Shown piece by piece: positions 14,263-63,334 of a stretch of DNA of 64,000 nucleotides. This stretch comes from Lepidodermella squamata. Its lineage: Eukaryota > Animalia > Gastrotricha. The position numbers and the translations under genes were made by a program. The notes under the pieces are model-generated. The model did not search any database. It was not told the DNA's origin and saw only the letters and a program-made list of their open reading frames with translations. Each line of letters starts with the position of its first letter. The first letter of the stretch is position 1. The stretch lies in contig JBLDXI010000011.1 in NCBI GenBank assembly GCA_047495785.1, forward strand, positions 310,001 to 374,000, in the 5' to 3' direction.

Positions 14263-17200
14263 CTAATGCAGTCCGAATGCGTAGAAAGATACATAAACAT
14301 GTACAACGATCATGTAATCTAAAGCGAGTAAGAGAGTAGCTAGATCGCAAGCTCTTAAAACGTTTATGCCAGCCACGAGTCCTTTAGCTACTTTAAGCTC
14401 TCGAAAAATTGGCTGATTTGCGTAGTGGCATGCGACCATTTCGTACATGGCTATAAGGGATGTTAGCCCATTCATTAGCAGCATGTATTTGACCATCAAA
14501 ATTCCCTGGGAAGTCATCGGAATTGCGTTGTAAACTTGTGATTGAGCCACGATTATCGACAAAAGGGCTGTCACGCAAAAAACTGGCCGATCCGAGGATT
14601 CAGGATCTAGAGCCAGGGAACCTACGATTGTCACCATCATAATGACGCAAGGCATCACTAAATTAACAACAAAATGGCCTGATTTACGGTCGAAATGAAG
14701 TTTGATCTTCGCATAACTCGATGAGTTGTTTCTAAGGTACATTGAATGGGCATTACCATGTGAGCTCTTTACGTCCATTCTTTTCCACATATCGCTCTTC
14801 AACTTCTCCAGCCCGGTTATAAACACACCACCAAAACTGAGGTATTCCATAGGTTGTTCGATAAAAAAGGTCAAATCGCAGTTCTGATCATCGAACGGGA
14901 AAGCTCGAAGGTCCAGCTCGCAATCTACTTTGAAGGTCCCAAGTCGGCTCCAATAGAAGTATAAGGTTCGGGTAGGGTATGTCGGAACATAAACGATCTC
15001 CAGTTTATCGGAAAACTTTGTGTTCACAAGAAAGATGTCATGAGACGCGTTCGCGCTGAGAATTTGAGGCTTCCAGAAATCGGATGATTCTCGAACCGAT
15101 AGCAACTCGCTTTTTTCGGCTGAAGGTGCCGTAGTAGAGCTGTCGCAACTCGTAACTACCCATTGAAGATTCAACGATGCGATCAAAGTCATTTGTCGCG
15201 ATTTCGCGTCGATCGAAACAAGGCGATCGACTTCGAATCTTAGATAGATCTTTGTTCCAACATCTGGTGCTTTGTTATGGAAAGATAATTGCGGGCATTT
15301 TAGAAGATCCTCAACTTGAACTGTTGGATACATGTTGCCATCGATGATTTTAGGTATCGGGAATCCTGTTTCGGAGTTGAACGCCAGATTCTCTACTACA
15401 GGCAGCCTTTTCCCAGTTGTAGATGTTAACGCTTTCGGAGTAGAATCAGCCTTGAAAACTGAGATTAGCCCGATGGTGGTATTATTATATTTCGAAGCAG
15501 TCGTAACACTTGTTGAGATTGGAGTTGAACTTTTGGATGAACTCGAAGTCTCAAACCTGCTAGTTGAAGACTCTTTGATAGGTTCAGTAGATGTGAAACT
15601 TCGCAGAATCTCAGTATCAGTTCGAAATGTACTAGAAAGAGTTGTCGAGGGTGATCTAGTCGAAGTCCCAGATGAAGTAGTCGAGCTCGATGAGGTTTGC
15701 GTCGAACTTCTGGTTGAAGTTGAAACCGTTTGAGTGGAGCTTGTAGCAGACGAAGTAGATGGATAGGGTGGGCTCGTTGAACTTAGTGTAGTCGACGTCA
15801 ATGTCGATGTTGCTGGACTCGAGCTGGAAACTTTTGACATTGACGTTGATGAAATTGGACTTGAAGTGGTCGTTTCAGTTGAAGTCATGGTTGAAGTCTC
15901 AGTAGAGGTTGGAACTGTAGCTGAAGGTGTAGCTGTAGTTGAAGCTGTAGTTAAAGCTAACGCGGTAGTTGAAGTTGATGGCGAAGTTGAAGTTGGCGTT
16001 GGAGTTGGAGTCGGGGTGGAACTTGAAATAGATTCTGTGGCTGTCGAAGCTGCAGTCGAAGTAGACGTTGTTGAGGACGATGAGGTTGTGGCAGCCGGAT
16101 CTATTAGGTTGAAGGTGTAAAAGCGTTTTAACAGAAAATCGCCGTCTGAGTTGCCAACAGCAACCATGTAGATCTTCATCTGACCCAAGCTGAGCATATC
16201 TCCGAATCCCAGGACAGAAACGCTTGAATAGCAATTCGAAGGAGCATTCGAGGAGCTCGGGGACATAGCAGCCTGAAAAAATGGGTCGAAATTAGTATTA
16301 CAACCTTAGAAATGAACTTACAGTGATCGTATCATTGTATAGCTGGATAACCATCCGATAGGTTGTGGAGGTCCCAGTGAAAACACTTGCTCCACAGGCT
16401 CCAGAGGAGGAAGCATCGAAGGCCCCAGGCATAACAACGAACGGGTAAGCTGGCACGCCATTTGGCTCGTAGGTAAGATAAGACTTCCCCGCTGGTTTCA
16501 ACTGTTGGAAAATCGCGAGACCAGTAAGAGAACCAAACCCGTTCGGGCAGTTGACGGGATTATTATTTCCTGATCAATGTAAAAGAAGTATGAATTATTA
16601 AATCAAAAATTAATCTAAGAAATTTCTTAAAATTGTGTTATTTCATCCAACATGAACCTAAGTCATCTAAATCCTAAATCTTTAGTTTCAGGTTTCCAGC
16701 ACCATGCAATTCAGTATCGCGAACCCAAAGACATCGAAAAGGGCTTGAAAGTGAAAGGTACAGGGTATCTCTGTGATCCAGAATAGCGGCCAGAAGTCAT
16801 TAGTAGAAATGGGCTCTTATTTCTACATTTTTTTATGATTGAGTATTTTGGAGTATTCTTAGTAGCTTTGCACTGGGAAGATTTTAATGCGGGACAATAA
16901 TTCTTCATTATTTACCAAAGGCCGGCAATGTAGAGCTGATACCCATGCCATACCACGCGCTGCTTGATAGCAGGGCATAATTCGATTTGGCTTCGTACTC
17001 GATGCGAAATTCTCGCAAGCCGATCGGCAAACTCGCAATGAACCACATTGTACCGGCGCAGAATAACAGAGACTGTGCGCCCGTCATGGTTGTAAGCTGG
17101 TAGCCATCACCAGGACTGATGAGAGTGCCTAAATCTGTACCTGCGCCGGACGGATTCGGCGTCACGCTTGAATTGGCGCCATCAAATGATAGCGAGCTCA

Positions 17201-17318
17201 AATACACAGCGTTATAATTCGACATAGGCAGCGGCATTAGGTTTAGGTTAGGAGTAGGGTCCAAAGATAGACATATCTTGCTAAAGCTGAAAATCCACAA
17301 AACTAGGAGGGCTTTCAT
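14263..17318 (-). CDS. Gene A: signal peptide + L-type lectin-like domain + Ser/Thr stalk + Cys-loop ligand-gated ion channel subunit (~886 aa); exons 17318-16916, 16569-16322, 16272-14263
   Basis: GT-AG junctions join in frame. Cys-loop CELDLRAFPFDDQNC, WKPQI motif, four TM helices with M2 DRPVFCVTALLS. Stalk and channel lie in one 2-kb open exon. Confidence 0.88.
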
Positions 17319-18753
17319 GATTTCGAAAAAAAATGTTTGAATGTCAGCAGAAGTTGAATCATTGGATTTCGCAAAGGAATCGATGAGCTAGTGGACACTT
17401 TAAAATTCTAGCGAGATGTTAATGAAGTGAGCGTATTTCGATCAGTTGGCGGTGTCAGAAGCCTCGACATCGCCCTTGCTTTTTGGAGGCTTTATTACTC
17501 TAGCGTGTAGTTGACAGGTTGCGCTGCAGTGAAAATCCTTTCTATTATTGTTGATATGCTGTCACGCGAATGTTTAGGGCGTCGACCATCTTGACAATTT
17601 ATCCAACCTCAACCTCATCGGTATGTTATAAATTTGACTGGAATGAGCCGCAAACAGAAGAAAGTTTTGAACGCGCCAGCGAATTAAAAAAATCGTTATA
17701 ACCTTTTCGTGGTGAACTCACGCACTTGCTCACTGACGTAATCAGTGTCCAGTGTTAAAAGAGGTAAAACTGAAACATTTCAAGTCTATCGATTTCGAGC
17801 GCAGGACAGAAAACAGCAGACATTTTTTTGCCGCTGCTCGCTGACGCAAATCTAGAATCAACGGTTCGCTGTTCGCTGGATGTCGAATTTGTCATTGCAC
17901 TAGCTAAACTACAAAATAGAATCTAGAATGCCTTTTCACTAGTGAACATTTTACTAAAAATGCTAAATATTATATTACCTCGTATTTTCGCAATATTTAG
18001 TCATTTCAGTTTACATGAAAGTCTGTAGTAGAAGTTTTATTCAATTTAGCCAATTACAGCTTACAGCTTCCTAACGTCATCTATCGAGGAAAAATCAGAA
18101 ATTAACTATGCTTCAAAAACTAAGTATCAACTTTATACCCATGTTACGTCGATTTCGCGAGTTACGAGCTTCTTAACAGCTTCGTAATCTTTACCACCAT
18201 GCAGTTGATGGCAATGAAAAACTCGGATCCTAGCGTGTTTATACGTTACTGTGGAGGTGACAGGTGTCAAGTAAAAGCGCCGCTGTTTTTTTCCCTCTTC
18301 TTCACGTAAAAATGCTCAGCTTCTACTATTCATCCATCACATTTAAGCTTGAATCTGTCGTGAACAATTTGAACTTTTGCCTGTACTTTTGAATGTTTTA
18401 GAGCGTTTGCTTGAATTAGTGTATGACGAATTTTCAGCTATTCTCTGAGTTAAGAGTTAAAGAACTGGTATACTTTAAATTTTCAAAACATCACGACGCC
18501 ATCAATCGAAATTGCGCAGTAAGAAAAATATATTTTCTCTTTTTTTTATTATTCCAGCGTGGATTGCATTGATTTTTGTTTCCATTAACGCATTGAACCC
18601 AATACGGGATTGCTGCCAGGACAATTACACTCGGGATAACGTATTTCGATCAACACATCAATCACGTATGTTATTTTATTCAAATGTTTCAAAACAAACA
18701 GCAGGTGATTGATGGCATTTTGAGCATTTAAAAACAGGGGTAAGTACACAGCT

Positions 18754-21700
18754 TCAAAGTGCTACGAGACTGACGTAGATATGAACCGCGACCAAATAAT
18801 CGATAGCCAGGAGGAATGTTACAAAATCACAAGCTCGAATGAGCGTCATGCCAGGCATCAAACGGCCGGATATTTTTAAGAGTCGAAAATTCGGGATATC
18901 AGCAAGATGGCACGCTATCATTTCGTAAAAAGCGACCAGAGCTGTTAACCCCGTCATCAGCATTATATATTTCGCCATTAAGATGCCCTGAGAAGTTTTC
19001 GGGACCCCGTTCAAGACTTGAGATTGGGCCACGGTGATAGCTAGTAGGATTGTTACGCAGAAAACAGGCCGATCCGGTAGATCGGGTTCCATCACGAAAG
19101 ACCCTAAAACCATGCCAATCAGTACGAAGCAAGGTACCATTAGGTTCACGACGAAATGCCCTGGTTTTCGGTCGAATCTCATCTTGATCGAGGCGTAGCT
19201 CGATGTTGAATTTCTCAGCAGTAGGGATTGCGTTGTTCCGTGGGAACTTTCGACCTTACCAGCCTTCCACATATCACTATCAAGCCGTTGCAGGCCGGAT
19301 AGATGGATTCCGCCGAAGCTCAAGTACTCATTGGGTTGTTCTGTTATGAAGGTCAACTCGCAGGTTTCATGATCGAACGGGAAAGCTCGGAGGTCCAGTT
19401 CGCAATCTGCCTTGAAGGTTCCAAGACGGCTCCAGTAGAAATACAAAGTTCGGGTAGGTTTGGTTGGCATGAAAACAACTTCCATCCTCTCGGAAAATTT
19501 GCTCTTTTCGAGAAAAATATCACCAGATGAATTTGCGCTGAGAACCTGGGGATGCCAGAATTTTGACTCCTCGCGAATGTAAAGCCGTTCACTAACATCA
19601 ACCCCAGGAACGGTTGTAGCGCTATCGCAAAGCATCGATACCCATTGGATGCTCATCGAAGCTATCAAATCTAGCTGTTTTGACATGGTGTCAATCGCAA
19701 TGAGCCTCTCAACCTCGAAGTTCAAGTACAGCTTCAAATTAGGCTCGGGAGATTTGTTCTCAGGGGCGAGAAATGGACAATTTAGAAGGTCGTCAACCTT
19801 CAAAGCGGGATACATGTTCCCATCAATTATTTTGGGGATAGGGAACCCGGTTTCTTCATTGAGGATTGGAACTTCCATCTCACCAGCTTCAACAGTAGTT
19901 GATATAGATACAGATGCGACGGTTGAAGTTGGGATGGAGTTTTGCAAAGTAGTTGTAGAGCTCGACAAAGTAGTTGCAGAGCTCGATTTCGAGATTGGAG
20001 CTTGAGAGGTCGAAGATAGCGATGTTTTAGAGCTTTGGGAAGTTGAAGTCGAAGTCGAGGTGGTCGACGAGGTTCCTAAAGAGGAGGACGAGATTGTTGG
20101 TGATGTTCCCATAGAGGGCGTCGAGGAAACCCCAGTCGATTGGCTTTGACTGGTTGAAGGTCGGCTAGTCGACGATGAGGATCCAATCGAGGTAAAAGTA
20201 CTGGTCAAGGTCGAGAGGCTCGAGGTTGAGATCCCAGTAGCTGTAGGTGTGGCGCTTGAACTGGAACTTGAGTTTGGTGTTGTAGCGCTCGAAGTTGTAG
20301 TAGATTTTGAAGTTGAGGTCGATTGAGAACTTGATGCACTACTAATAACAGAACTTGGATTCGACATACTTGTTGATGGAGTTGAACTCGAAGTTGAAGA
20401 AGTCGAATCTGTTGAGGTCGAACTATGGATTGGAGTTGTCGTAGATGTTGTTGTAGATGCAGTTGAAGAGCTGCTAGATTCAAATGTCGATGTTGATGTG
20501 GTCGGTGTAGTACTAGTTGTTGTTGTTGTTGTTGTTGTTGTTGATGTTGATGGCGATGTTGTTGTGGTTGAGGTCGTCGTTGTCGATGTTGTTGAAGTTG
20601 TAGTAGTAGCTGAATCCATCAGTTTGAATAGGTAGTAGCGTTTCAGTAGTAAATCTCCGTCGTCGTTGCCAACCGCTGTCATATAGATGCGAATCGCGCC
20701 ACTGCTTAACATTGCCCCGAATCCAGGAACTGAAACGCTCGAGTAGCAAGTCGACGGCGCATTCGAGCCGCTCGGTGACATTGCAGCCTGAACAATAGAA
20801 AACATTACGATCAATATTTCGTATTTTCCAGCGATTTTCCGTTTTCCGCTGAATAACGTCTGGTGATACCAAGATCCGAGATGCATTCATTTGAAAACTT
20901 TCATTTTGGTTCGAAGACCGCATAAAGTGTCAAAAGTAGCCTTTTGATGTTATAAGCACATACAGCCCTCAAATTTACAAAAAACGCCCACTTTTCCCCT
21001 CGCAATTACTGCGCAATCATTGTCCTAAGCGGGGTCCTGAACTGAGCAAATCAAAACAGAAAGGGGCGCAAAATTAAACGCGACTAGCGTGACTATTTTG
21101 GTTTCTTTCATTTTATGCATATTTTTCTGATTGATTCATCAAACTTGGGGTCATTTTTTTAAATAATTTTCCGTTTTACACGTCACCCTTATTTTATAGC
21201 TGAAATGCTAATTTTCAAAGGCTTGACATAGTTATTCGTGAGTTCAAAATTGTCAATTAAAAATTTACGTATCGGGATTTGTACTCCCATTGTACTCCCA
21301 GGCATTGAGCTAGCGTGTTATTTTTCATGCTTTTTTAACCTGTAATTTTTGAATCAATATCGTGCTTGCCTGTCATGGTCCGCAGTACATTAGCAATCAG
21401 CTTGTACAACGTCATGTAAAAAAATGTATTGCCAGGCAACCGGAAAACTATTTCAACGATGAGTTCACAAGCGTCCTAGAATGAAGGCCATGTCTGAATG
21501 AAGCGCCGATACAGTTTGCTTATTTTACTATTGAAAAAGCTATTCGACGAAGGGATAAAGTGAATTCATTATCGAATTTTGTACCTAAATATTCCAATCA
21601 GTACCAAATCCCCAATATCAAGACCCAGTCTCTAGCCCTAACCCTAAAACCCAACCCTATCTATTTAAATAAGCGAATAAAATGGCTAGGTATTGAATAA

Positions 21701-22491
21701 CATAAAATTTGGCAACGCAGTAAGATTACACAAGCATTTCCTGCCGCTAAATTTTCGGTACTTACGGTTATTGTGTCGTTCACGAGCTGTATCACCATTC
21801 GATAGGTGGTAGCTGTTCCCGTGAAAACGCTAGCTCCACAAGCCCCCGCCGATGAGGCATCAGCCGCCCCAGGCATGACAACGTACGGCAAAGCTGGTGT
21901 CCCATTTGGCTTGTAAGTGATATAAGACTTGCCGGCTGGCTTCAGTTGCTGAAAAATTGCGCAGCCCGTTAGCAAACTAAATCCATTAGGACAGCCACTA
22001 ACTAAATTTCCTGCAAAGGAAAATCATGAAAATTATAGGAAATTATTTAGAAGAGGTTGAAAACGAGGAAAGTAATTTCTGGAGTATTTTGGCAAAAACC
22101 AACCGTATAAAGGTGTAGTTGAGCTGAAAAACATGCCAAACCAAGCATTGGCTGATGATGTTGAATAATCAGCCTGAGCTTCGTATTCAACTCGAAATTC
22201 CTTCAACCCGGCGGGTACGTATAAATTGTACCACATAGTGCCCATACAAAACAGCAGCGATTGAAGGCCAGTCATTGTGTTCAGCTGATAGCCGGACCCA
22301 GATCCAAGGAGGGTCCCTAAATCCGTCCCGATCCCGCCGACATTCGGCGTAACGCTTGAGTTTGTGGCGTCAAATGAAAGATAGCTGATGTAGGAAGCGT
22401 TGTAGAACGGCGTTGGCAGGGCCATCAAGTTCAAATTTGGGGATGGGTCTGCTGCGAAGCCTATTTTAAACAAGGGTAAACATAAAATCAA
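18754..22491 (-). CDS. Gene B: paralog of A (lectin-like + stalk + Cys-loop channel); exons ~22491-22104, 22010-21766, 20787-18754; first coding exon not located
   Basis: Same intron positions and phases as gene A; Cys-loop CELDLRAFPFDHETC; M2 DRPVFCVTILLA. Confidence 0.85.
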
Positions 22492-23214
22492 CTAAATTTT
22501 CCGTAATCTTACAGAAGAAAATGATAGTTGAGGCCTGAGACGCAGCAACGCAGGATAACACGATTAGTCGCCACATTTCGTTCGAATGATCAAGTTTTTT
22601 CGCCTGAAGCTGCTCGACGTCGATTAGCGAGAGCAAGCGTCACGTGTCCCTTAGAGCCATTAGGTCATCAAATTTTCATGGCATTGACGTCGCGCCGCAT
22701 GTTAAGTGCATGTTATTTTTGTCGGCATAATATGGACATAATGCCTAGTTGTTCGGAATTTCCTCTCCAATTATTTATTATTTATCGCATGCTTTGCTTT
22801 CGTTTCACAAACAATGCCCTCCTTCGAGTCTGTGTTTTCACGTCCGCGATGCGTTGCCTTGCGACCGGCAACATCTGAGATTCATGAAATTTAGAATAAA
22901 CCTGCCGGGTTTTGCCAGTCTCTGCGCAGACGTCTGTTAGCGTATTTCCTTTTGCTCTGGCCTTGGGCGAATGAATTTGTCTGTTGTCTGGCGCTCGAGC
23001 CGTCTGAAGTCTGATTAGGTTCGAAACCTGGGATTTCGTCGAATACTGAGAAGACAGAAGACAAATTGTAGAGTCATTTCGCTCATCCATCTCATTTTTG
23101 TTTCAATATTTTGGAGTGAGTTTTTAAATTATCACCCCTTCCTCATACCTCGAACACAATGTTTTTAATAACGAAACAGTTTTACTTTATTTTCAACCTG
23201 CCCCATTTAAACGA

Positions 23215-26684: not shown

Positions 26685-27301
26685 TGCCAATGAAGTCGCA
26701 GATATTGTAGAATATGTTGTTAATGCAATAATGGTATGTTAGCTAATTTTCGGCCTGTCGATGAGCCACGCGCCATATATACATCGAGTTGAGCAAACAA
26801 TCCTACTCATATCAATGAATAATGCCTTATCGCCAGACTGCAGTGCGGTGAATTATGGTTTTTTTGACGTAAAAGCTGCAAAACATAGCAAGTTTCCCTT
26901 TCCTCTTGCTTGGAGATACGATTTCTCACTTAATCGCGTCATTTTATCATTCGTTGAGAAAAAGGGAACGTTACACAGGAGCAAGCTCTGAGGTTACGTT
27001 AGAAGTCGCATGACAAGTGCTATGCGCCATCTTCAGCTATTTACTAGGGCGTTGGTTTACTAAAAGGCTAGAGATGGCACAATTCATTTCCTTACAGACG
27101 TAATCTTTAATTAATTCAGCTTTAAAACTGGTTCGAGGTGCAATCTTTTTTGAGGCTGAGAAATTGGCTTTCTCTGTCCAAATCATAAAGCAAAGTGTTT
27201 ATTCATTTATCTCGCCGAAGATCATCTCAGAACAAAATGGAAAAACAATGGTGGACAAGTCGTAGTAGTTTAGAAATCATGTGAGTTTACGAATTTTCGT
27301 T

Positions 27302-28444
27302 TCAAAATGCAACGAAGATAACGTAGACATGAAGCAGTGCATACAGCCCGATTGAAGTGAGGAAACTCGCTAGATCAATAGCTCGACAGGCTGAAATAGG
27401 CTTGAAACAGCCCATCTTAACCGTCGCAGTCTTGACATGCTCATGCGTGGCAACGAGAGTGCAGGCAATGAGATCAAATAACGTGATCAAGCCGTTCAAG
27501 CCAGTTAACAACAGCATGTAATCAGCCAAAAGAATTCGCTGTGACGTATTCGGAATCCCGGCTAAAACGTCGGAATGAGCTACGATAAGGGCTAGAAGGA
27601 CTGTCCCACAGAAAATACTCCGATCTGGCAACTCAGGCGGCATGACGAATGAACCGAATACTAGAAACATCAAAATCTGACACGGCAACACTAGATTCAC
27701 CAAATAATGGGTCGGATTTCGCTGAAATTTCAATTGAACCGAAAAATAGCTCGACGAGCCGTTTCTCTGCGCGATTGATGAAGTTTCGCCGTAGCTGAGT
27801 TGCGAATCTAAAAGGGTCCACATGTCGTTACTCAGATTCTGCTCATCACTTATCTGGACATCGCCGAATTTCACGAAATCCACCGGTTGTTCAATGCGAA
27901 AGTCTAACAAGCATTGTTGCGTATCGAACGGGAATTTCCTCAGGTCCAACTCGCAATCTGAGACGAGATCGCCTGATCGAATCCAATGGAAGTACAGCGT
28001 TCGATTCGGTTTGTGAGGTTCGAAGACCACCTCCATTTTCGACGCGAATTCGTCACTGGACATGAACATGTCAGTTGATGACGAGGCGAATATCAACTCA
28101 GGCCGCCACATTGTCGAGAGATCTGTCGCGAAAACACGTTCCGAAGAATTCGCATTTGGGGCTGTGTAGCTGCTCTCACAGGCTGTGACTGTCCACTGGA
28201 GACGCAGCCATGACGTGAAGGCGAGTTTTTGCTCCAGCGATTCAATGTCGATGAGGCGCTGCGGGCGCAGGCTGGCGTAGATTTCAGTATTGGCGAATGG
28301 GGATTTAACTTCGGGCTGGATGTACGGGCATGTTAGGATGTCGTTGATTCTAACGACCGGGTACAAATTTCCGTCGATGATCTCAGGAATCTGGCTGTCT
28401 GCTGCGACGAAGCCGAAAAATGCGAGAACATGGAAGAGCTTCAT
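27302..28444 (-). CDS. Gene C: single-exon Cys-loop channel subunit without lectin or stalk
   Basis: MKLFHVLAFFGFVAA signal directly followed by IPEIIDGNLYP; CELDLRKFPFDTQQC; four TMs. Confidence 0.9.
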   Translation of the reverse strand: MKLFHVLAFFGFVAADSQIPEIIDGNLYPVVRINDILTCPYIQPEVKSPFANTEIYASLRPQRLIDIESLEQKLAFTSWLRLQWTVTACESSYTAPNANSSERVFATDLSTMWRPELIFASSSTDMFMSSDEFASKMEVVFEPHKPNRTLYFHWIRSGDLVSDCELDLRKFPFDTQQCLLDFRIEQPVDFVKFGDVQISDEQNLSNDMWTLLDSQLSYGETSSIAQRNGSSSYFSVQLKFQRNPTHYLVNLVLPCQILMFLVFGSFVMPPELPDRSIFCGTVLLALIVAHSDVLAGIPNTSQRILLADYMLLLTGLNGLITLFDLIACTLVATHEHVKTATVKMGCFKPISACRAIDLASFLTSIGLYALLHVYVIFVAF

Positions 28445-28826
28445 TTTTGACAAAACAATAAAATGATGTAAAATTGTGTGTATATCCAGGAGCGAATTTT
28501 ATCAATCGATGAGCTCATGCCATTAGCTCGCGCCGGAATGAAAAATTCATGAAGTTTTGAGTGGTGCACATTGTTTTGCGTCACATTATCTCGGAAAATT
28601 ATTTGTTAGTCACTGTTGACTGATTATAATTACTATTGATTTCGCCCGTAGTGACTCGTTTTTTCAAGGCAAAACATTTTTTAGTCCTAAAATGTTTCCA
28701 ACCGTGTTTCAAACATTTTTCTTATAAATAGATGGATAATGTTCAGGTGATTTTGGACGCTTGTTTGATACGGCAAGACATTGTGCTGAGTTTCAATTTT
28801 TTACTTAGTAAAAGCTAGAATAAAAA

Positions 28827-31800
28827 TTAGGAGACGTTTTTCAAATATTTGATGAGTTTGTAAGCGTTAGCTTCCAACTGATTCCAATGCTGAACAGCTA
28901 TCATGTTTATTCCAGCGATCGACGCCTTCCAAACTTGAATGGATTGCCTTCTCCTTCGAGAGTTATTGACTGATATGACAAAAAGCCGCCTGCCTATACT
29001 GACTGTCAATTGTTTTAGCGAAATGAACGAAGCTTTGTCATATTGGGACGATGAAGTGATGACCACGATAACAGGCAAAGCAGCCGACCCACTAGCATCT
29101 GAAAGTTACTGAATCGCTGACATTTCGCCGAAATAAAATGCGACATATTACCCTGAGGACCGAAAGCAGAACTCCGGAATATTTGAGCCAAGCTGTTGGA
29201 TATATTGCCTCTCCCGCCGAAATACATCAGTGAATCAATCGCAGAGTCAAGACTTGTTCTGTCCTCGAAACGATCGGAAAGTTTGAACACTCCATAGCCA
29301 GTGTTTCGACCGGCGGAGCTTATTAAGCCGACCTGTAATTAATAAAATAAAGTTCATTAACAATTATGCTTCATATTTATGTCATTACCTGAATATTAGC
29401 TGGGTTAGTTTGAAAGTTGATTGCCATGTGGTCGGTCGTTAGTTTCAGGAAAGTCTTGATTGTAGTCAGTTGCCGCTTTGGAACGTTGAGGGAAGTGTCG
29501 ATAACAAAATAGACATTCAAATTTCGGTTCACGCCTAGAAAATAGGCAAGTGTTATTTCGCACTTTCGTGATAACAAACTTTGAATGATCGTCTCGGTTA
29601 TTAAAGTTAGATGTTTGTGTACAAAGCCCAGAGTTTTGATTCACTCTATAACTTGATGATAAAAAGCTTACTCTCAAGCTTGCAAGACATGTCACAGCCA
29701 TCGCCAACTAATGCATTACCGTCGTCGCACTCTTCCAAGTTTGATTTATCCAACTTTTTATCCCCACAGCCCTAATGCACGGGAAAATTCCGTTGAAAGG
29801 TTACGAGAAGTCAGAATCCAACTCACAGATTGGTATGCTGTAGTAGAGCTGAAATCAGTCACAACAGTTGTCGTGAGTAGCGATGTGGTTACTTGTGACG
29901 TTGAACTGCCTGGTGTACTCGTTGTAACTGGTGATGGACCATTCGCAGAAGTTGACGAAATTGTGTTTGTCGAAGAACTAGTTTCTGGGGAAGACGTAGC
30001 TGTTGTAGTACTTGAAGAGGCGGTCGAAACAGAGCTATTGGACGTTGACGAATCTGTTGTAGATTGACCTGAGGTTGATGTCGAAGAAATAGCTGGAGTC
30101 GAGCTTTGGAAGGAGCTAGTAGACGCTTCAGTGGTTGGGGATGGGCTTGAATCCGGAGAAGAAGTTGTTGTCTTAGGCGTTGTTGAGCTCTCAGATGTCG
30201 ATTCCAAGCTGGTAGTCGTAGTTTCCGTTGAAGGACTACTCGAAGTTGATGTTGACGGAACTGCGGTAGTTGTAGTGCTTGAAGTCGAGCTCGTGCTGGA
30301 TGTGGTTGAGCTCGCAGAAGTCGGATCCAAGCTCGTGGTTGTAGCTTCTGTGGAAGTGCTACTCGAAGTTGACGTTGGCGGAACTGTATTGCTTGAAGTC
30401 GGGCTCGTGGTAGATGTAGTTGGGCTGGTTGTAGTTGAACTAGTTGTTGAAGAGGTTGATTGGGTAGTTGTTGTAGGGCTGGTTGAGCTTGTTGTAGTTG
30501 TAGGTGTCGTTACTGTGGAGCTTGAGCTCGATGTTGAAGTGGCTGATGCTGGCGTTGTTGGAGGCGATGAAGATAGGAACCATACGTGGAACCTCGTCAG
30601 TCGAACTATGACATTGTAGTTATCAGCCGCCATCAATCTGAACATATTGGTGTAAGTTGGCATGAACCCGGACATGTTGAAAGCAGCAACATTTGACAGG
30701 ACAATTGTTGGATTACTGCCAGTTGAAGATGCCAACGCGACCTTGGGAAATCAAATTTGGCGTATTGAAGCTAAATAAGAACCGAGTGTTTGATAAAGCC
30801 CAACTGCCGCAGGTCTCTCTATTACTTTAGTCCCAAAAGTTGGGCTGGTTGTAATTTTTGAAATTTTGGAAGAAAATTAAACGCATTTTTTGAATGGAGC
30901 TCACTGAGAAAATCTACCATCCCGTATCCATTATTTAATCGAAGAAATTAAAAGTATACCTTAGAAAACTCTGAGCCCCGATGAAAACGTTTTCGGTAAT
31001 TTTTAGTTTTTACCTGCGTAGATGAAATTTCTTAGGATTTTTCAAATATCATACTTTATAACTATTTAAATGGCAATTTGGGTTATTCTACATTTTTCCT
31101 GGCCATAAGATGGGATTTCACCTCTCTGTAGAGTTTCTGTTTCTTTTCCCCGTATTTTCTTTGTTTGCGTTAATTATGGAGAAAAAATGCTAAGTTTGGG
31201 CTAACTATAACAAGCCTAACACGGAGTTTTTTTTAAGGGGAGGACATGGTTGACAATGTCAACACCAAAGCGGGTCAATGTCAACACCAAAAATATTTGC
31301 ATCACCCGGGCCAGACAGCAAAATGAGAATTTATCCCACTGTTTTCTTAATTTTTAGAGGTTTGAGAGCGTGTTCCAGTTGGAAATCTTCAAAGTTTTCT
31401 CGCTTCGCTCGGTTATTAGTGGAGTTTGGCGAATACAGGAAATAAAATTTCCATCCCTGGCAGTACGGTATCCAAGATCGCACCCTGCGGCCGAATTTGA
31501 GAGAGAATTGAACCGCCTTAGAATAACCCTTTTGATTTAAGCTCTTATTCCTGAAAAATGTCCACCGAAATAAAAAACAACAAGATTTCTAAGATTAATT
31601 ATGTGTGAAATTTACTATTTTCTTACGTTTTCTCACGGGTAATATCGTGCAAGTCGCTAGAGTGCCTCGCGGAGAGATTTGTCATCATGACGCGATAAAC
31701 ATCCTATTTTTAGACTACTTTCAGCCAAAACTACGTGAAAAAACCGATAGCTTAAGCTCGCAAGTGTACACTTATCAAATAATTGCTCACTATTAACAGA

Positions 31801-33195
31801 ATCGAAGAGATGACAAATGAGGGTATCGCGAGCGAGCGTAGCGAGCGAGCGAACGATTTTTTATCCATTTCTTCATGTCAACACCAAATAACATAAAGTC
31901 AACACCACTGGATTCCTCAAAAAACACACTGCCTAACAAGCCATGTAGTACGACATCCCCCAATTGTGTTCAGTCGTCTAAACAGCTATAAGTTCAGGAT
32001 GCGGTGGGTGCGGGTTGAGGGCGGTTAGTTGAACCCTTGCTTGAAGAACTTGAAACTCTAAAACCACGAATCTGAGCGAACGCACTGCATAATTTATTGC
32101 GAACCCCTCATCCGTCCCCTCTAACAGAGCACCTCGATGAGTGCGGGCGTGTTGATCCTTCCGGTTGAAGACATCGAGGCATCGATGTACGGGCGCAAAC
32201 ATCACAACCTGTCGATGCAGTCTTCAATAATCAATAAGTCTAAATTTCCCTAAAATTCTTAATATGGAAACCGAATAAAAAACTGATAGGAAACACTCTG
32301 TTTCGCAAAGGGCAAAGGTGTTCAAATTAGGGTGGGGAAAAAAATGAAAAATGGTGCTATAACCTCTTATGTTATATCGTAACCCGCAGCAATCAATGAT
32401 AGCGCTAAGAGATACAAGGGAAATGTAGCAAGATCTTACTGTGACAAAATCGTTCAGAGATTGAACAACCATGATGAAACTGCACGAGCCAGACGAGTTG
32501 AGTAAAGGTGAGCTGCCGACTGCAGACGCATTGCCGGGTAGATTGACGTAGGTGAAAGGTGCTGTAGGGTGGTAAGTGGCGTAGGTCTCGCCATTCGGCA
32601 TCAACTTCTGCCAGATCATCAGGCCTATCGGCTGCGCGTATTGAACAGGCTTGTACACTAGACTCAAAATTCTTCGTAAAGTTACAAAAAATGCATGGCG
32701 CTATGACTCACTTGTGGTAATGGTGTTAGCGATTATGAGACCGAACCAGCCGTAACTTCCATTTGTTAGATAACTCGTCTGAACATGGATCTCGGCTCGC
32801 CAGGCAGGTATTGTGTAATTTATCCTCTATTTACGCAAAAACTTGATAGGAAATTAGCATAATGTTGTCGAATCCTCACTGCAGTGGATCTGATGCTGCC
32901 TATGCTCTCGTTAAGGGCACCACTAGCTAATTGAATGTAGCTCCCAAAATCTCGAGCTGCATTCCCGAACGAGAAATTACTTGATGGAATACTGAGGTTG
33001 ACTCTGTCAATCGAATATTCTGGCATATAGGTGGCGTTAGCAGTCAAATAAGGCAGTGGGAGGATGCCTATCGAAGGCTCAGGTAGTTGCGCAAGAATAG
33101 CTACAGGTTAATTCTTTAAGAAACCAAAATTCTATCTCAATAATCTTACCTGGGACATACAGCAAAATTAGGTAGCAGATTGAGATTAGAGCCAT
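28827..33195 (-). CDS. Gene K: secreted lectin-like + Ser/Thr stalk + CGD..EECDDGN..DGC..C repeat + VWA protein; exons 33195-33150, 33100-32880, 32826-32712, 32657-32440, 30741-29827, 29771-29672, 29534-29389, 29332-29152, 29098-28827
   Basis: All junctions are GT-AG and join in frame. VWA-like NVYFVIDTS...QVGLIS...YFGGRGN...VIVVITS; no TM segment. Exon structure mirrors gene J. Confidence 0.8.
31230..31920. repeat. Repetitive insertion inside the long intron of gene K
   Basis: gtcaacacca repeated twice near each end (31258, 31279, 31878, 31898), plus cgcttcgctcg and gcgagcgagcgtagcgagcgagcg motifs. Confidence 0.4.
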
Positions 33196-45872: not shown

Positions 45873-48800
45873 TTAAAGTGCGACGAGGCAAACATATAGA
45901 TGAACAGCTGTTGAGTAATCAATCGCAAGCAGAAAAGCAATCATGTCAAAGGCTCTGATAATTCTCATGTTAGCAGCAATGCCCCCGACTACCTTCAAAG
46001 ATCGAAAACGGCGTGAATTTGCTAAGAAACAGGCAAGCATTTCGTAAAAGGTAATCATAGCAGTCAGTCCAGTCTGTAGCAGCATGTAATTCACCATTCA
46101 CCATCAAAACAGCTTGAGACGTTTTAGGAATCCCAGCCAGAATTTGAGACTGGGCTACAATAATTGATAAAAGAGCCGTGACGCAGAATACCGGTCGATC
46201 TGGCATTTCCGGGTCAAGAGCGAGCGAGCCTAGGATTGTAGCCATCGTAATTGCACAAGGCATCATCAAATTGATGACGAAATGGCTGTTTTTTCGCTTG
46301 AAATGCAGCCTGACGCGTGCGAAACTCGCTGAGCCAGTGCTTATTAGTAGGGCCGCGTCGTTCCAAACGAGGCTTCAGCTTTAACTCCATCCCACATGTC
46401 ACTTTCGAGTTTCCTCAAACCTGATATAAAAACACCGCCAAAACTCGAAAAATCCCCCGGTTGCTCAATTACGAAGGTCAAATCGCACATTTCAACGTCA
46501 AAGGGAAATGCTCGGAGGTCAAGGTCACAGTCGGTTCGGAATGTCCCGAGTCGGCTCCAGTGGAAGTAAAGCGTGCAATATGGCCGCGTCGGTATGTACA
46601 CAATTTCTAGTTTATCAGAGAACTTGTTTTTTCGAAGGAACATTTCGTTAGACGAATTTGCGCTGAGAACCTGCGGCTTCCAGAACCGGGAAGATTCCCT
46701 CGGCGATAGAAGTTCCTTCATTTCGATAGAAGGAGCTGTAACTGAGCTGTGACAACTCGTAACAACCCATTTTAAGTGCAACGTAGCGATTAGAGTCAAT
46801 TGTCTTGTTTTCGCGTCAATGGCAACTAGCCGATCGATATCGAATCGCAGGTAGATCTTTGTGTAACTTTCCGGAGCTTTGTTTTGCGGAGAGAGTTGCG
46901 GGCACGTTAGCAGGTCTTCAACTGTAAGAACTGGATACATGTTTCCATCGATGATTTTCGGGATCGGGAAACCTGTTTCAGCATCGAACCCCAGCTCTTC
47001 AGCCACTTGAATATTCGCGACTGGTTTCGTAGTTTTGAATATCCCGCTAATATAAGCTCGGATAGTTGTCCAGTTTGCTGGAGCCAACCTTGTCGGTGAT
47101 GATGGATTCGATGTGATTCGCTGTCCCGTGGAGTTTGAAGCAGTTGTCGAAATAATCGTTTGGCTTACAGTCAGTGGCAAAGTACTACCTAAACTTGCCG
47201 CAAGAGTTGAGAAGCTAGTCGTGATAACAGAACTTGAAGAAATTGTTGATCCTGAGCAAGGGAACAAAAAAAACGAACATAAGCATACTTCTGAAAACGA
47301 AAATGAACCTGGAAAGGTTGTGGTAGAACTTGGGCTTGAATTCGAGTAACTTGATGTTAGAATGGCTGACGTAGATTCACCCGTGGCTAATGTCGAAGGG
47401 TCGACTGAAGTCGAACTGGCAGAAATTGTAGTAGTAGTAGTAGATGAGCTTGGAACTGAATTAAATGAAGTGGTCGCGGATTGGCTTTCGGTCGATGGCG
47501 TGGGATCGCTTGAAGTGGAGGTTTGAAAAGAGGTACTGATTATCATTGTAGTTGTTGTTGAGGACGGGCTTGAATCCGGCGTAGAAGAAGCAGTCGTAGA
47601 TTGGCTTATTACGGACGTTGTTGGGTTGATAAAAGTAGAAGGCCAAAAGGTTGAAGTCGAATCCAAACTGCTAGTTGTAGCTTCTGTTGAGGAGCTACTC
47701 GAAGTTGGTATTGAGCTTGGGTTTGGACTGGGTGAAGTTAAACTACTTGTTGTTTGGCTCGTTGTCGCAGGAGAAGTTGAACTTGTTGTAATTGTCGATG
47801 TTACTGAAGAGCTTGAGCTCGATGTTGAAGTTTCTGATGCTGGGGTTGTTGGCGGCGATGAAGATAGGAACCAGACGTGGAATCTAGTGATTCTTACGTC
47901 CACATTGTAATTATCAGCTGTCATCAATCTGAACACATTAGCGTTATTTCTCATGAACCCAGACAGATTGAACGCGGCGACGTTAGACAGGACGATGGTT
48001 GGGTCAATGCCAGCCGGAGATGCCAACGCGACCTAATTCAAAGCAGCATTTTACTATTGAGTTACTTTTTTGCATAGGTTATAGATTGGAACCTCTTCCA
48101 GAATCGAAAAGCGCTCATATTTTGGTTACTTCTTACTGAAGCCTCACTAGATCCGCGTTTGACGCTCAATCTAAATTAATATGCTAACTTCAAAAGTTAA
48201 CCTTGGATTTTGGATTACTTTGGCCTAATCATATTGATAAGTTCGTCTCCGGCACTGTCCCCCGATGGGCTTTTATTCTGACCAATAGTCGAATTCCCTC
48301 AGGGCTCGAAGCCTAACCACAGGGGGAACCCTTATGTTTTCTTTCCTGGCCCCAGCGGAAACTTGAGTGATGTAAGGGGGGACCCTTACCGATATTCCCC
48401 TTTCGGTAAAATTCCCATCTTCTACACTGAAGTTCTTACTGTGACAATATCATCCAGAGATTGAATGACCATGATGAAACTCGATGAGCCGGATGAATTG
48501 AAAAGTGGCGCACTGCCGACAGCAGACGCGTTGCCCGGTAGCAGGACATACGCGAAAGGTGTTGTGGGGTGGTAAGTGGCGTAGGTTTCGCCATCTAGCC
48601 CCAACTTCTGCCAGATCATCAGGCCAACCGGCTGCGCGTATTGAACTGGCTTGTTCACTAAAATAGCAAAGAAGGAAACACAATTGTAAAACCTTGGATG
48701 ATATAAGGCAAATTCAGAATCAGATGCAAAAAAATATTAACAATCCCACTGATCAAAATTATAGAGGAAGATCTCAAATTCGATGTATCCACATCCCACA

Positions 48801-49599
48801 TCTACTATTTTAGCGGGTTGCATTTCTAAGATCAATCTAGCTACTATAGCCCAGCATTTCCCAAACCGTATCCTATGGGGCACCCGTGTACTATGCCAAC
48901 TTTCCTGTGTCCTGTGGGCCTGAAAATGACAAAATATTAATAAGTGCGATCTACGCTATCCACACTAAAGGTCATTTTTGAACTTTGTTCTGACTCTAAT
49001 TCGGAAAATGGTCAACAAGGTATCCTTCGAGCCATTCTAATAGGAGTTGGGATCTAGCCTAATGGTATCTGAACTAAGTAATCCAAGCTCCAGGCAAATG
49101 TTAACTTGTTGTAATGGTATTTGTCATTAGAACGCCAAACCAGCCATAACTGCCATTTGTTAGATAGTTTGCCTGCACGTGTACCTCGGCTCGCCACGAA
49201 GGTTGCGTTACATTTAAGCGCTGTTGAAACAAACAAACTTTGCTTCAATTTCAAACTCTTTCAAACTACTTGCTTACAGTTGTAGATCTGACAGACCCTA
49301 TCGTACTCTCGTTCAGACTAGCGCCTGCCAGCTGAATGTAGCTACCCTTGTCCCGAGCCGCAGTTCCGAATGTGAAATTGCTCGACGGAACGGTAAAGTT
49401 CGTTCTATCGATTGAAAAATCTGGCGCGAATGTCGCGTTAGCCATCAAGTACGGCAGCGGTAGAATGCTCGTCGAAGGCTCAGGCATTTGCGCAAAAACA
49501 TCTGAGAAGATCTTACGCGATTAGTCTAAAGATAACAAAAATCAAAATCGAACCTGAGCAGCAAAGTAGAAATGTGCACCAAACTAAGAACAGCGCCAT
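45873..49599 (-). pseudogene. Gene D: lectin-like + stalk + Cys-loop channel with two frameshifts in the channel part; exons 49599-49554, 49501-49278, 49220-49106, 48657-48440, 48032-45873 (possible 57-nt in-frame intron 47308-47252)
   Basis: CDLDLRAFPFDVEMC; one base missing near 46351 and a 7-nt duplication (ATGGTGA twice) near 46095; lectin exons nearly identical to gene K. Confidence 0.8.
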
Positions 49600-51103: not shown

Positions 51104-52684
51104 TCAGCCACTGAAGATGACGAAAGCAGCGTAGACATTAGTGGTGATGAAGTAGTCTAGCGCTAGTAGGAACACGCCGAGATCGCACGCCCTCAGCGGG
51201 CCAAGGTTCGGCACTAAAAGCATCGAATAATCGATGTCAGCTGACAGGAATCGCAATTTCGACGACAAAGTGCACGCCAACATGTCATAAACAGCGACAC
51301 TCGCCGTCAAACCGGTCAATAACAGCATGTACTGCGCCATTAGCACGTTTTGCGATGTTACTGGTACCTGAAAAAAAACAAAAATACCAAGTTCATAAAA
51401 AATTAATGAAATTGAATTTTTTAAATAATTTGGGAAATCAGAATTTTTTGAGAATTTTGAAAAAATTTCGGAATTTTTTAAAACGGCAAACCTCGCCCAA
51501 AACATCTGATTGTGCGACAATTAAGGCTAGCAAACATGTTCCACATAGAACCGGCCTATCGGGTAAATCCGGAGGCATGACGAATGACCCAAGAACCAGG
51601 CTGGTTAGAACCAAACACGGAGCTAGTAGGTTCGCGACGTAGTAACTTGGATTGCGATCGAAACGCAACTTGATCGAGGCGTAACTCGCGTCACCATTTC
51701 GCTGCAAGATCGAACGCGTCGAGCCGAACTTCATCGCGACGTCAACTGATGTCCACATTTTGTTGGACAACTTCTCTCGGCCTAGTAATTTAACCCCGCC
51801 GAAGGAGAGGTAACTCGTTGGTTGTTCGATGATGAACATCATTTCACATTGTTGTGAGTCGAAAGGGAATTTTCGTAGATCCAACTGGCATTTCGAGTCG
51901 AATGATCCGAGACGGGTCCAGTGGAAGTAGATTGTTCGGTTTGGTGTAGTCGGGTAGCAGACAACCTCGAAACGATCTGGCATGTCTTGCTTCGAGAGGA
52001 ATAGATCGTCCGAACTGTTAGCTAGGAGCAAGTCCGGTCGCCAGATTGCTGAGCCGTTTTCGGGGTTGAAGACCACTCGTTCTGTAGATTCAACCGCTGG
52101 AGTTGTGTAGTTGCTATCGCACGTGAAAACCGCCCATTGAAGCTTGAGGGAGGCGATGAGGGACAGTTGTTGGTTGATCGAGTCCAGAGAGGCGAGGCGT
52201 TCGGCTTTGAAGGTCAGGTAGACTTGGGTGCCCACAGCCGGGGCTTTGTTGTTAGGGGATAGATATGGGCACATGAGAAGGTCGTCGAAGCGAATGTTCG
52301 GATACAGACTGCCGTCGACTACTTCGGGGATCGGGAACGGCCGATCACTGATTTCGTTCATGCTCGTGTCTTGGGAACCAGATCCTGGAATGACTGATGA
52401 AATCTAAACGTTAATGAGTAGCGTAGAATGTTGTAGCCTATCTATGGAATAAGGAATACGAGACCCGATACCCTACGGTCTGTCAAGGCTTAGGTTGACG
52501 TATCACTTAAAGTCCTTCTCAACTATAGGTAGTTAGGTGGGTTGATAGTTGGTTGTTCGTTGCGTATAAAAGTGGGTGGTACCCAACATTCCTCACTTGA
52601 ACTGGCTGCCCGTTTCTGAAGCAAGCTTTACTTACCTGAAGATATAAGAAGCAGCGATAATAAGATTACAGTTCGAAATTGCAT
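51104..52684 (-). CDS. Gene E: Cys-loop channel subunit without lectin or stalk; exons 52684-52636, 52384-51492, 51367-51104
   Basis: MQFRTVILLSLLLISS signal exon; CQLDLRKFPFDSQQC; intron in the M2-M3 loop joins VLGE|VPVTSQ in frame. Confidence 0.85.
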
Positions 52685-55159: not shown

Positions 55160-57684
55160 TCAGACCATGCTGTTGAGGTAGCCTATTACTTTGAATGCAC
55201 TTTCTTCCAATATTGCCCAATGAGCCACATCCAAAGACGTGGTATTATGCGTCAGCAGACTAGACCGTTTCGTTCTGTTCACCGTAACGATGAGAAGCTG
55301 GCATTTGACACTGTTTGCAAGAGCTAGCAACGATTGAAATCTTTCGACATCGTCAGGCGCTGATGAAGCTATCATAATCACAACTCGTTTAAAATTTGAA
55401 GAATCTATGGAACAAAAATTAGGGTTCTATTTTGAACCTAAAACCTGAACAATCAACCTTCTGTTGTGAATGCCGGTGCCTGCAAGGTCTTGAAAATGCC
55501 GTTCGTTAGATTGTCGCGACCTCCGAAGTAAAGCGTGGAGTTATTCAAATTTTCAGCTAATAGGACTGTCTGATCCGGTTGCCTAGAGACTCTGTACCCA
55601 CTCGTCCTGCCGCCAAAACTTATCAAGCCAACCTAGAAAATACAAGCATCCTGATTTGAAATTTGAAAGAGAGTTTTCATGAACAGCATCAAATTTTAAT
55701 CCTATCTACTATGATCTAATCCCAAAAATACTTGCATTATTATTTCAATTATTATTTCAAACGACTGAGTGCTTTCTAAAGATACCTGCGATGTCGGAAG
55801 TGAAATTTGGCTCCTCAATCGCCGATAAATTAGAGCGACAAAAGCTTTGATTGCAGTGAGTTGTAATATTGGGACTCGAAGAGATGTGTCTATAGCAAAA
55901 TACACGTCCAAGTTGCGATCGACGGCTGTGGGAAAATAAAACAGATACTGTAATTTTTAATCCACAGAATTAACAAAAAACGAGACAACGGTTCCACGGA
56001 ATTCATTGATTTTGCCGGACAAATTTGGCTTGAATTGGTATAATTCTTTAATTTTTAGCGCGTTTCCTCATTCCAGCCTCATCTTTTTTAAGTTTTTGAT
56101 TCATTTAAGTGACCGTCCTCTATTTCTAATAACTGAATTTACCTTCTAAAGTGCAGTTCGAGCTACAGCCATCGCCATCCACCTGATTACCATCATCGCA
56201 CTCTTCTGATAGTGCAGCGTCAAACTTATTGTCCCCGCAACTCGTTGATAGTGTCGCCGATCGCTGCTGCGTCTGAGCCAGGGTTGTAATGGCAGAAGTG
56301 CTGCTACGCGTAGTTGATGTCGATTGCGTCGATTGAGAAGTTACTGTACTAGGGTAAGTTGTAGAACTCGTGGAAGTTACGCTTGACTGTGTTGTCATGG
56401 TTGTATCTTGAGCCGATGTTTTCGTGGTTGTTGTTGTTGATGATGAAGAGGAAGTCCTAGGTGTTGTAGATGTCTCTGTGGAGCTTGTGGCCTCTGTTGT
56501 AGGCGGGCTTGTTGTTGCTGGCGTTGTAGTAGATGGGGTTGTTGTTGTTGCAGTCGTTGATGTTATTGTAGATGTGGTTGTAGATGAAGTACTTGTGCTG
56601 CTTGAACTTGAACTGGTTGCATCTTGGCCCGGGCTGAGAACCCAAAAGCTGAATTTGGTAAGCCTAACGCCCGCATTCGCGTTGTCGGCTGCCAGTAATC
56701 GTATAACATTGGAACTGAATTTGATAGTGTTCCCCAATCCTGGGCAGCTCATGCCAGATATGCCGATATAAGCGGTAGAGTCTGATGCTGTCGCAACCGC
56801 AAACTTGATTTTTACATCATTTTAATTTTAATTTAATTTATTTGATTTTTATATACTTTTCACAAAATTTCTCATCGCTAACTTACTGTCAATGAGTCGT
56901 TTGCGGACTGGAAAATTAGTATTAAATCCGCAGAGCCATTCGCGGGCATAAGATTCGCAGCTGTTATAGAGCCGAAATGCGTTCCAGAGTTGACAATCCG
57001 CTCATGAGCTGTCGGTCCATTCGGCCGGTAAGCCCCTAGAAGATCTATCGGAACGTCCGCCCTGAGCTTAAGCCACATCGCCACACCGGTCAGACCTGAA
57101 ACTGTTATCGGCATAGCTGATGTGTCTGAAATTTCAGGTAAATTTCAAATAGGGTTAAAGATAGCAAGAACTCACTCGGCGAGAGGCCAGACGTTGTGAA
57201 AACTATGCCTAACCAGCCGAAACTTCCATTCGACCTGTACCGAGCTTGAAGACTCAACTCCGCACGCCAGTACAACGGAGCTGACCCTGCAAACTTTTCA
57301 ATAAGCCATAGAGATTCCTACTTATAGCTAAACTTTGGGAAAAGTATCGCTTTTACCATGGTTGTAGAACGCATCGAGCCGAATGGAATTTCCGCCTGGG
57401 TGAAATTCGCCATTTGAACGTAACCGGCGAACTCAACCGCTGCATGACCGATCAACCATGCCGTGGATAGACTCATGTTATTGGTTTTGTCGAATGATAG
57501 CGATGGGATGTACGTTGAGTTCGCGTAGCCAGTTGGCGTGGCTAACAAGTTGGCTGATGGAGCTGGGTCGATGCATCGAACGCCTGGTTTAGAAGAAATA
57601 GAAACTGTTTATGAACCTGTTTTCCACTCACTAACCATTCTGGTGAAAATACGGCAGGAATAGTAGAATCAGGCTGCCTCGCAT
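55160..57684 (-). CDS. Gene J: secreted lectin-like + Thr stalk + Cys repeat + VWA protein; exons 57684-57636, 57583-57357, 57293-57176, 57125-56887, 56803-56143, 55925-55786, 55632-~55458, 55404-55160
   Basis: In-frame GT-AG junctions; CGDNKFDAALSEECDDGNQVDGDGCSSNCTLE; DVYFAIDTS VWA start; paralog of gene K. Confidence 0.8.
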
Positions 57685-63302: not shown

Positions 63303-63334
63303 ATTTTTTTCTCTGTTGATTGAAGGAAAAATAA

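Follow-up and report, generated by a model that had tools for sequence, protein, structure and literature searches.

Apart from the genes described here, eukaryotic Cys-loop receptors are taken to start at the ligand-binding domain, and among them the cephalopod chemotactile receptors are nicotinic-derived channels in which acetylcholine binding has been lost. In octopus, such receptors ‘taste by touch’, sensing surfaces and microbial cues (10.1101/2025.03.03.641191). Extra N-terminal domains in ligand-gated ion channels of the pentameric class (pLGICs) have been described for prokaryotic channels such as DeCLIC, and are thought to modulate the channel (PMC9897478; 10.1101/2025.02.24.640012). 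Plant L-type lectin receptor kinases (LecRLKs) illustrate that a lectin-type ectodomain may be joined to a signalling module (PMC5485988). In the present work we analysed 64,000 nucleotides of the gastrotrich Lepidodermella squamata (contig JBLDXI010000011.1, positions 310,001 to 374,000; hereafter the window), and specifically two tandem neighbouring genes, A and B, that lie on the minus strand within positions 14263-22576. Each predicted product runs from a signal peptide through a globular ‘head’ of approximately 245-250 amino acids (aa) and a serine/threonine tract, or stalk, into a Cys-loop channel subunit of approximately 365 aa. Neither the papers nor the protein collections that we searched contained a eukaryotic Cys-loop channel with a lectin, laminin G or ConA-like extra domain, and the terms ‘N-terminal’ and ‘additional domain’ do not occur in the main text of a pLGIC inventory (PMC4795631). 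This agrees with the suggestion of a first-pass annotation that the head-stalk-channel design is undescribed; in the papers found, extra N-terminal domains were reported for prokaryotic channels only.

Gene structure, stalk and constraint

Gene A is assembled from three exons that join into 886 aa without interruption, across introns with GT..AG borders in phases 1 and 0. Its start codon is the first in-frame ATG to follow a stop and introduces a hydrophobic N-terminus, exon 1 ends at the donor G/GTAAAT (a slash marks the exon border), and exon 2 is bounded by the acceptor cag/GA (phase 1) and the donor ACT/GTAAGT (phase 0). Gene B is assembled from four exons that join into 899 aa, and both gene A introns recur in it at identical codon positions and phases. 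The additional, first exon of gene B carries the signal peptide and ends at a phase 1 donor (T/GTAAGA), which makes an in-frame join to the acceptor aaaatag/GC at 22460. The start at 22491 originally proposed for gene B is a TTG inside the next exon, with an in-frame TAG directly upstream.

The end of the head, the Ser/Thr tract and the entire channel lie in a single open reading frame (ORF) of 667 aa in gene A and 710 aa in gene B. This bears out the earlier observation that the tract shares one open exon with a complete Cys-loop ectodomain and four transmembrane segments. Between head and channel there is neither a stop nor a second signal peptide. Because gene A has no Met codon ahead of the ectodomain, and because the only one in gene B is not followed by a hydrophobic segment, the channel is not expected to be made alone. 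A and B are intact, selectively constrained genes, each predicted to encode a single polypeptide.

In A the stretch from head to ectodomain measures 252 aa, and in B 267 aa; its core (220 and 254 aa, respectively) consists of 62-69% Ser plus Thr with 5-7% Pro; in gene A the proportions are 32% Ser, 30% Thr and 7% Pro. Five genes of the window bear such a tract, and in each of them the coding frame contains 0 stops, compared with 3-11 in the other two sense frames; for the gene A tract the corresponding counts are 0 versus 8 and 11. Ser is encoded by all six of its codons and Thr by all four. This codon usage and the stop-free frame indicate selection for amino-acid composition rather than for a nucleotide repeat. 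Tandem Repeats Finder detected only small local repeats in the tract, and no long tandem-repeat build. We also considered whether the tract might be intronic or otherwise non-coding, a possibility that the frame statistics rule out. Being long, Ser/Thr-dominated and Pro-containing, and kept at the protein level, the tract has the composition of mucin-like proline/threonine/serine (PTS) segments; the stalk is presumably O-glycosylated.

A comparison of A with B provides a further measure of constraint. Intron positions and phases have been kept despite saturated synonymous sites, and in every head exon and in the channel the nonsynonymous divergence (dN) is 0.17-0.30, with a synonymous divergence (dS) that is greater than 1 or not estimable. 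For example, the C-terminal part of the head, which is encoded by exon 3, has 73% identity with a dN of 0.22 and a dS of 1.1.

Relative to the window, a public DNA run has numerous single-base differences, as well as small insertions or deletions, between positions 16200 and 22199, with contigs at about half depth; such a pattern would fit two diverged haplotypes in a heterozygous diploid. Sixteen of the 22 listed haplotype differences in coding sequence are synonymous in the proposed frame (six of nine in head exon 1). Both by divergence and by polymorphism, A and B are under purifying selection in the proposed frame. Taken together, the DNA evidence that makes the case for the fusion (gene structure, divergence, polymorphism and the frame statistics of the tract) leads us to regard the four-part fusion, from signal peptide through head and Ser/Thr stalk to Cys-loop channel, as very probably real at the genomic level.

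The channel and the head

The channel part matches the Pfam family Neur_chan_LBD (PF02931) in gene A (44.4 bits, E 1.7e-11) and gene B (33.4 bits, E 4e-8), as well as in two channel paralogues of the window, called C (40.6 bits, E 2.5e-10) and D (34.6 bits), where the cut-off is 26. A profile of eight channel paralogues from the window, when compared with PDB, aligns from the ectodomain to M3 with the nicotinic acetylcholine receptor (nAChR) alpha7 at E 8e-22, followed by other nicotinic subunits and 5-HT3A. The Cys-loop has the form C-x13-C with FPFD (CxLDLRAFPFDxxxC), reading CELDLRAFPFDDQNC at aa 668 of A and CELDLRAFPFDHETC at aa 684 of B, and its columns are invariant across the paralogue alignment. 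Hydropathy reveals four C-terminal hydrophobic segments in A and B, the first three of which (M1-M3) align with solved nAChRs; the Pfam family Neur_chan_memb gives a weak match (E 0.007 in C). The pre-M1 Arg, the 6' Thr and 9' Leu of M2 and the M2-M3 Pro are all kept. According to the alpha7 alignment the -1' position is Asp, and by this analogy the channel is probably cation-selective. Other peculiarities are a very short M3-M4 loop of approximately 25 aa and a 6-residue insertion after the Cys-loop.

Two features of acetylcholine binding, the loop B Trp of the aromatic box and the loop C Cys pair of alpha-type subunits, are lacking. First, the loop B Trp in GSWSYGG of alpha7 corresponds to the Leu of EYLSFGG. 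Second, the alpha7 segment YECCKEPY corresponds to a Cys-free segment, and thus the vicinal Cys pair of loop C is absent. Because of these two changes, acetylcholine is not the expected ligand. Sequence places the channel in the Cys-loop superfamily, on the nicotinic/5-HT3 side, and by its binding residues it is not an acetylcholine receptor. In a word-seeded search, none of 5.8 billion proteins matched it at E<=1e-3, although such a search needs shared 5-mers and so is not proof of absence; it is likely that no relative shares enough 5-mers. The channel family is very divergent at the sequence level, and we infer that it comprises lineage-specific orphan receptors of the chemosensory type.

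A local jackhmmer search located five copies of the head in the window, carried by genes of three kinds: the fused channel genes A, B and D, and two genes without a channel, X1 and X2. Head identities are 63-80% between A and B and 71-82% between X1 and D, and fall to 23-37% between the groups A/B, X1/D and X2. Exon 1 of the head is 63% identical in amino acids between A and B, and exon 2 of gene A is 80% identical to that of B and 27-37% identical to those of the other three heads.

The first-pass annotation had likened the head to the L-type lectin domains of ERGIC-53 and VIP36 on the basis of its motif order. Our searches give this assignment no foothold. Pfam contains no family that matches any of the 13 exon 1 or exon 2 head pieces at E<=10, or the exon ORFs at E<=1, and a PDB profile search with the exon 1 and exon 2 head alignments produced no lectin and nothing below E 0.25. 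These searches used exon pieces of the head, and their power is lower for that reason. When 1.84 billion representative proteins were searched exhaustively with HMMER, the exon 2 head profile retrieved no true homologue. Its six matches were dismissed as spurious, in that they are sums of weak repeat matches, each contributing at most 11.5 bits per stretch, in long repeat proteins. None of these searches yielded an alignment to a lectin on which the conserved Ca2+- and sugar-binding Asp/Asn/His residues could be placed. At the sequence level, then, the head is an orphan family.

Structural modeling offers a partial view of what this domain may look like. With low confidence, AlphaFold2 builds the exon 1 head piece as seven strands with no helix (predicted local distance difference test, pLDDT, 52), and the exon 2 piece as three or four strands plus one 3-residue helical turn (pLDDT 55). 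Language-model neighbours in the ESM Atlas, which we use as leads only, include DUF1349, DUF1961 and GH43_C2 for exon 1 of gene A (scores 0.80-0.81), and for exon 1 of gene B they are dominated by Laminin_G_3, which accounts for 71 of the 100 nearest named clusters (scores 0.77-0.85). All four of these families are members of the ConA-like lectin/glucanase clan. The head is a conserved, selected extracellular module that is probably all-beta. We consider it fairly probable that it adopts a ConA-like beta-sandwich of some kind, and improbable that it is an L-type lectin in the strict sense.

These observations bear on the notion of a glycan-gated channel, in which the head would be a true L-type lectin, and sugar binding would open or modulate the pore either by a pull on the stalk or by docking of the head onto the ectodomain. 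An extracellular, conserved and beta-rich head with weak ConA-like leads is compatible with such a device, and an ectodomain that lacks the classical transmitter-binding residues makes some other input conceivable. However, no sequence test linked the head pieces to Lectin_leg-like or to any other lectin family. Furthermore, a low-complexity stalk of approximately 250 aa cannot transmit a defined conformational change, two headless paralogues in the window (C and E) have the same ectodomain, and the same head is carried by non-channel proteins. On balance, we regard glycan gating as unlikely.

Module exchange in the cluster and the role of the head

The coordinates of all genes are collected in Table 1. 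The channels of C and E are headless paralogues, and C has its own signal peptide just before the IPEIIDG start that it shares with the fused channels. The head-plus-stalk module is not channel-specific, because it is also present on the non-channel, secreted-type genes X1 and X2, where it precedes other extracellular parts. In the region 55163-56821, the Cys-rich repeat of X2 matches DUF4215 at E 6.4e-6 and 26.8 bits, just below the cut-off of 27; a VWA match in its later exons is weak (E 0.17), and the VWA reading is not established by Pfam.

Table 1. Positions of the fused genes, their parts and their relatives in the window
Feature	Position	Strand	Content
Gene A exon 1	16916..17318	-	start codon, signal peptide MKALLVLWIFSFSKICLS, approximately the first 116 aa of the head
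Gene A exon 2	16322..16569	-	mid-head (TGLAIF .. NDTIT), the most conserved part of the head
Gene A exon 3	14263..16272	-	head end, stalk and channel; acceptor ttttcag/GCT
Gene A exon 3, first 61 aa	16090..16272	-	C-terminal part of the head
Gene A Ser/Thr stalk	15364..16119	-	core 15460-16119, then a less biased linker to the channel start
Gene A channel	14263..15363	-	ectodomain from FPIPKIIDG, Cys-loop CELDLRAFPFDDQNC, M1-M4, stop codon
Gene B exon 0	22513..22576	-	start codon and signal peptide (MWRLIVLSCVAASQA..); absent from the first-pass list
Gene B exon 1	22104..22460	-	head, first part; intron position and phase as in A
Gene B exon 2	21766..22010	-	mid-head
Gene B exon 3	18754..20787	-	head C-terminus 20608-20787, stalk core 19885-20646, channel 18754-19845
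Gene C	27302..28453	-	headless channel paralogue; signal peptide directly before the channel; one exon, 383 aa
Gene X1	29761..33086	-	head and Ser/Thr stalk, no channel; directly upstream of headless channel C
Gene D	45873..49487	-	head exons 49275-49487, 49104-49214 and 48440-48652; large exon from 48032 with head end, stalk and channel
Gene E	51104..52684	-	headless channel paralogue; candidate separate signal exon with its start at 52684; M2-M3 region holds one intron
Gene X2	56129..57572	-	third head subtype and stalk, then Cys-rich repeat and possibly VWA-like region; no channel

Gene D illustrates how these modules may be recombined. Its head is 71-82% identical to that of X1 and its channel ectodomain approximately 70% identical to that of A. 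At the nucleotide level its large exon has 73% identity to X1 over the first 380 nucleotides, and 71% identity to A over nucleotides 1039-1641, which comprise the stalk end and the ectodomain. The switch from X1-like to A-like sequence falls inside the low-complexity Ser/Thr tract. Because D combines an X1-type head with an A-type channel, heads and channels have discordant histories, and from these comparisons the Ser/Thr-coding tract looks like the joint for module exchange.

In-frame splicing from signal peptide through head into the Ser/Thr tract, which had been proposed for D as well as for A and B, holds for A and B through canonical, phase-matched introns. The design of gene D is identical, although we did not locate its signal exon, and in this assembly its channel contains two frameshifts, namely a 1-nucleotide deletion near 46351 and a 7-nucleotide tandem duplication at 46098-46104. 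Gene D is therefore probably a pseudogene and not a third intact example. That it is both mosaic and frame-disrupted, and that the cluster is a birth-and-death tandem array, might encourage the view that all the fusions are functionless by-products of unequal crossing-over in the Ser/Thr-coding low complexity of that array. We judge this very improbable, given that A and B are both intact at saturated synonymous divergence, with strong purifying selection in head and channel.

Several other features of the cluster involve the same modules. In the arrangement of X1 followed by C (27302-33086, minus strand), a deletion could create a head-stalk-channel fusion like that of D. At 63299-63616 on the minus strand there is a further head C-terminus, after which a Ser/Thr tract begins (..FAWVRVSRFYFWYLSEPAAATSTTPTTSAS..). 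It would bring the head-stalk genes to six, and the upstream exons of this one would lie at the right edge of the window or past it. On the plus strand, at 58575-63302, three two-exon channel genes form a separate clade with 15 residues between the Cys-loop cysteines (e.g. CLENSEISRFPFDSFKC) and a shortened region after the Cys-loop; the alignment of paralogues confirms both features.

With moderate confidence we favour, from the sequence comparisons, a role for the head in recognition or adhesion: it would anchor, cluster or tether an otherwise ordinary, probably cationic orphan channel of the sensory Cys-loop type, or raise the ligand concentration nearby. We are inclined to this reading because the stalk is flexible, the headless paralogues share the ectodomain, and the head also serves non-channel proteins. 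According to this model, a subset of the channels would have gained stalk and head by exon shuffling or by unequal recombination in the low-complexity tract. The O-glycosylated stalk would then hold the head, which is possibly ConA-like, tens of nanometres above a pentamer whose ectodomain is only about 6 nm tall. From there the head would most likely link the channel, by anchoring, clustering or tethering, with some partner outside the cell (matrix, glycocalyx or a foreign surface, for instance); alternatively, within the same scheme, it might capture ligand locally. Gating would stay at the ordinary ectodomain. The head is unlikely to gate the pore allosterically, because no defined conformational change can be passed along a flexible stalk of this length (about 250 aa); tethering or capture is more plausible.

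Four considerations weigh against this model. First, the sole public run that covers the locus is genomic: its depth is equal across introns and intergenic sequence, and it contains no joints. Second, the fold of the head comes only from the exon-piece models, with their pLDDT of 52-55, and structure searches with them gave nothing meaningful: in Foldseek against PDB the best match has an E of 0.1 and a template-modelling (TM) score of approximately 0.2, and an Atlas shape search reached a TM score of at most 0.42. Third, gene D demonstrates that head-channel fusions can decay. Fourth, gene A has a dibasic GKR, a possible cleavage site, 22 residues before the ectodomain; genes B and D have no GKR.

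The last of these points is one reason to consider that head and stalk might be cleaved or spliced away, so that the working channel is headless, with head and stalk either secreted as a mucin-like by-product or serving as a pro-region for trafficking. The signal peptide of gene B, being on its own exon, would permit alternative splicing, and X1 and X2 show that head-stalk proteins occur as separate secreted products. Against this, besides the absence of the dibasic site from B and D, Pfam finds only Neur_chan_LBD on the large exons of A, B and D, with no SEA, GPS or other autoproteolytic domain. Moreover, stalk and ectodomain occupy one exon, such that removal of the stalk would need an internal acceptor, and none is annotated. 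The retention of stalk and channel in frame in three genes also argues for a joint product, and we therefore consider processing of this kind not very likely.

An extension of the anchoring or tethering role is that these proteins are contact- or tether-operated ionotropic receptors, with an exchangeable head on a mucin tether for every subunit of the pentamer. In this case, binding to surface, matrix or microbial glycans would pull, cluster or locally load the channel, and the heads would be shuffled among channels and secreted proteins via the Ser/Thr-coding tract. We offer this extension tentatively, as a doubtful possibility.

Two sets of features in the window lie outside these modules. 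Six paralogous ORFs for multi-pass membrane proteins (23215-24381, 25493-26690, 34705-35898, 38847-40181, 44474-45760 and 53334-54578) are interleaved with the channel genes on both strands. They have a Pro-rich N-terminal region with PPxY-type motifs (PPPSY) and match no Pfam family; the copy at 25493-26690 consists of two overlapping ORFs and may be frameshifted or spliced. At 65-745, on the minus strand, is a C-terminal fragment of a non-LTR (long terminal repeat) retrotransposon ORF (..TYACETW..), whose closest relatives, at 50-54% identity, occur only on short ENA metagenome contigs.

Comparison with known systems

If the family is confirmed, the picture of eukaryotic Cys-loop receptors would widen to include an intact, selected group whose large distal domain stands on a flexible, glycosylated stalk, at a time when the role of the accessory N-terminal domains of bacterial channels is still debated. 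It would show that channels of this class can be combined with surface-recognition modules, and would provide a natural system in which to ask whether pentameric channels can be positioned or operated via a tether. It would also be an example of low-complexity coding sequence that serves as a recombination joint for domain swapping. In addition, the head itself represents a protein family whose exon 2 profile has no detectable relatives among 1.84 billion representative sequences.

With nicotinic and 5-HT3 receptors, such as nAChR alpha7, the A and B products have in common the ligand-binding domain, the C-x13-C loop with FPFD, the pre-M1 Arg, the 9' Leu and a fourth transmembrane segment. They differ from alpha7 in their N-terminal extension of approximately 500 aa (head plus stalk), in the Leu of loop B and the missing Cys pair of loop C, and in the approximately 25-aa M3-M4 loop and the 6-residue insertion after the Cys-loop. 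With respect to function, the nearest analogy to this orphan, sensory-type family is with the cephalopod chemotactile receptors. The likeness is one of function, and we know of no extra N-terminal domain or stalk in those receptors.

The L-type lectins (ERGIC-53/VIP36 and legume lectins) may belong to the same broad ConA-like superfamily as the head, a relationship suggested by the language-model leads only; no head piece has a Pfam or PDB sequence match that would connect it with them. The prokaryotic pLGICs of the DeCLIC type resemble A and B in that a pentameric-channel subunit is preceded by an extra extracellular or periplasmic domain. We found no sequence relation between this domain and the heads, and no DeCLIC chain is among the PDB matches listed for the head profiles. 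In DeCLIC the N-terminal domain adjoins the ectodomain without a long spacer, whereas A and B have a Ser/Thr stalk of approximately 250 aa between the two, belong to a eukaryote, and possess a true Cys-loop.

The stalk has its own precedents. O-glycosylated stalks are known from the LDL receptor, CD8, GPIb-alpha and membrane mucins, and segments of this kind should be extended when O-glycosylated. Like these mucin-type receptor stalks, the tracts of A and B are long, Ser/Thr-rich, Pro-containing segments of low complexity that separate a distal domain, which in those receptors is a binding domain, from a membrane-proximal part. The stalks of A and B differ from them in lacking long tandem repeats, and in standing on the ectodomain of an ion channel rather than on a single-pass anchor.

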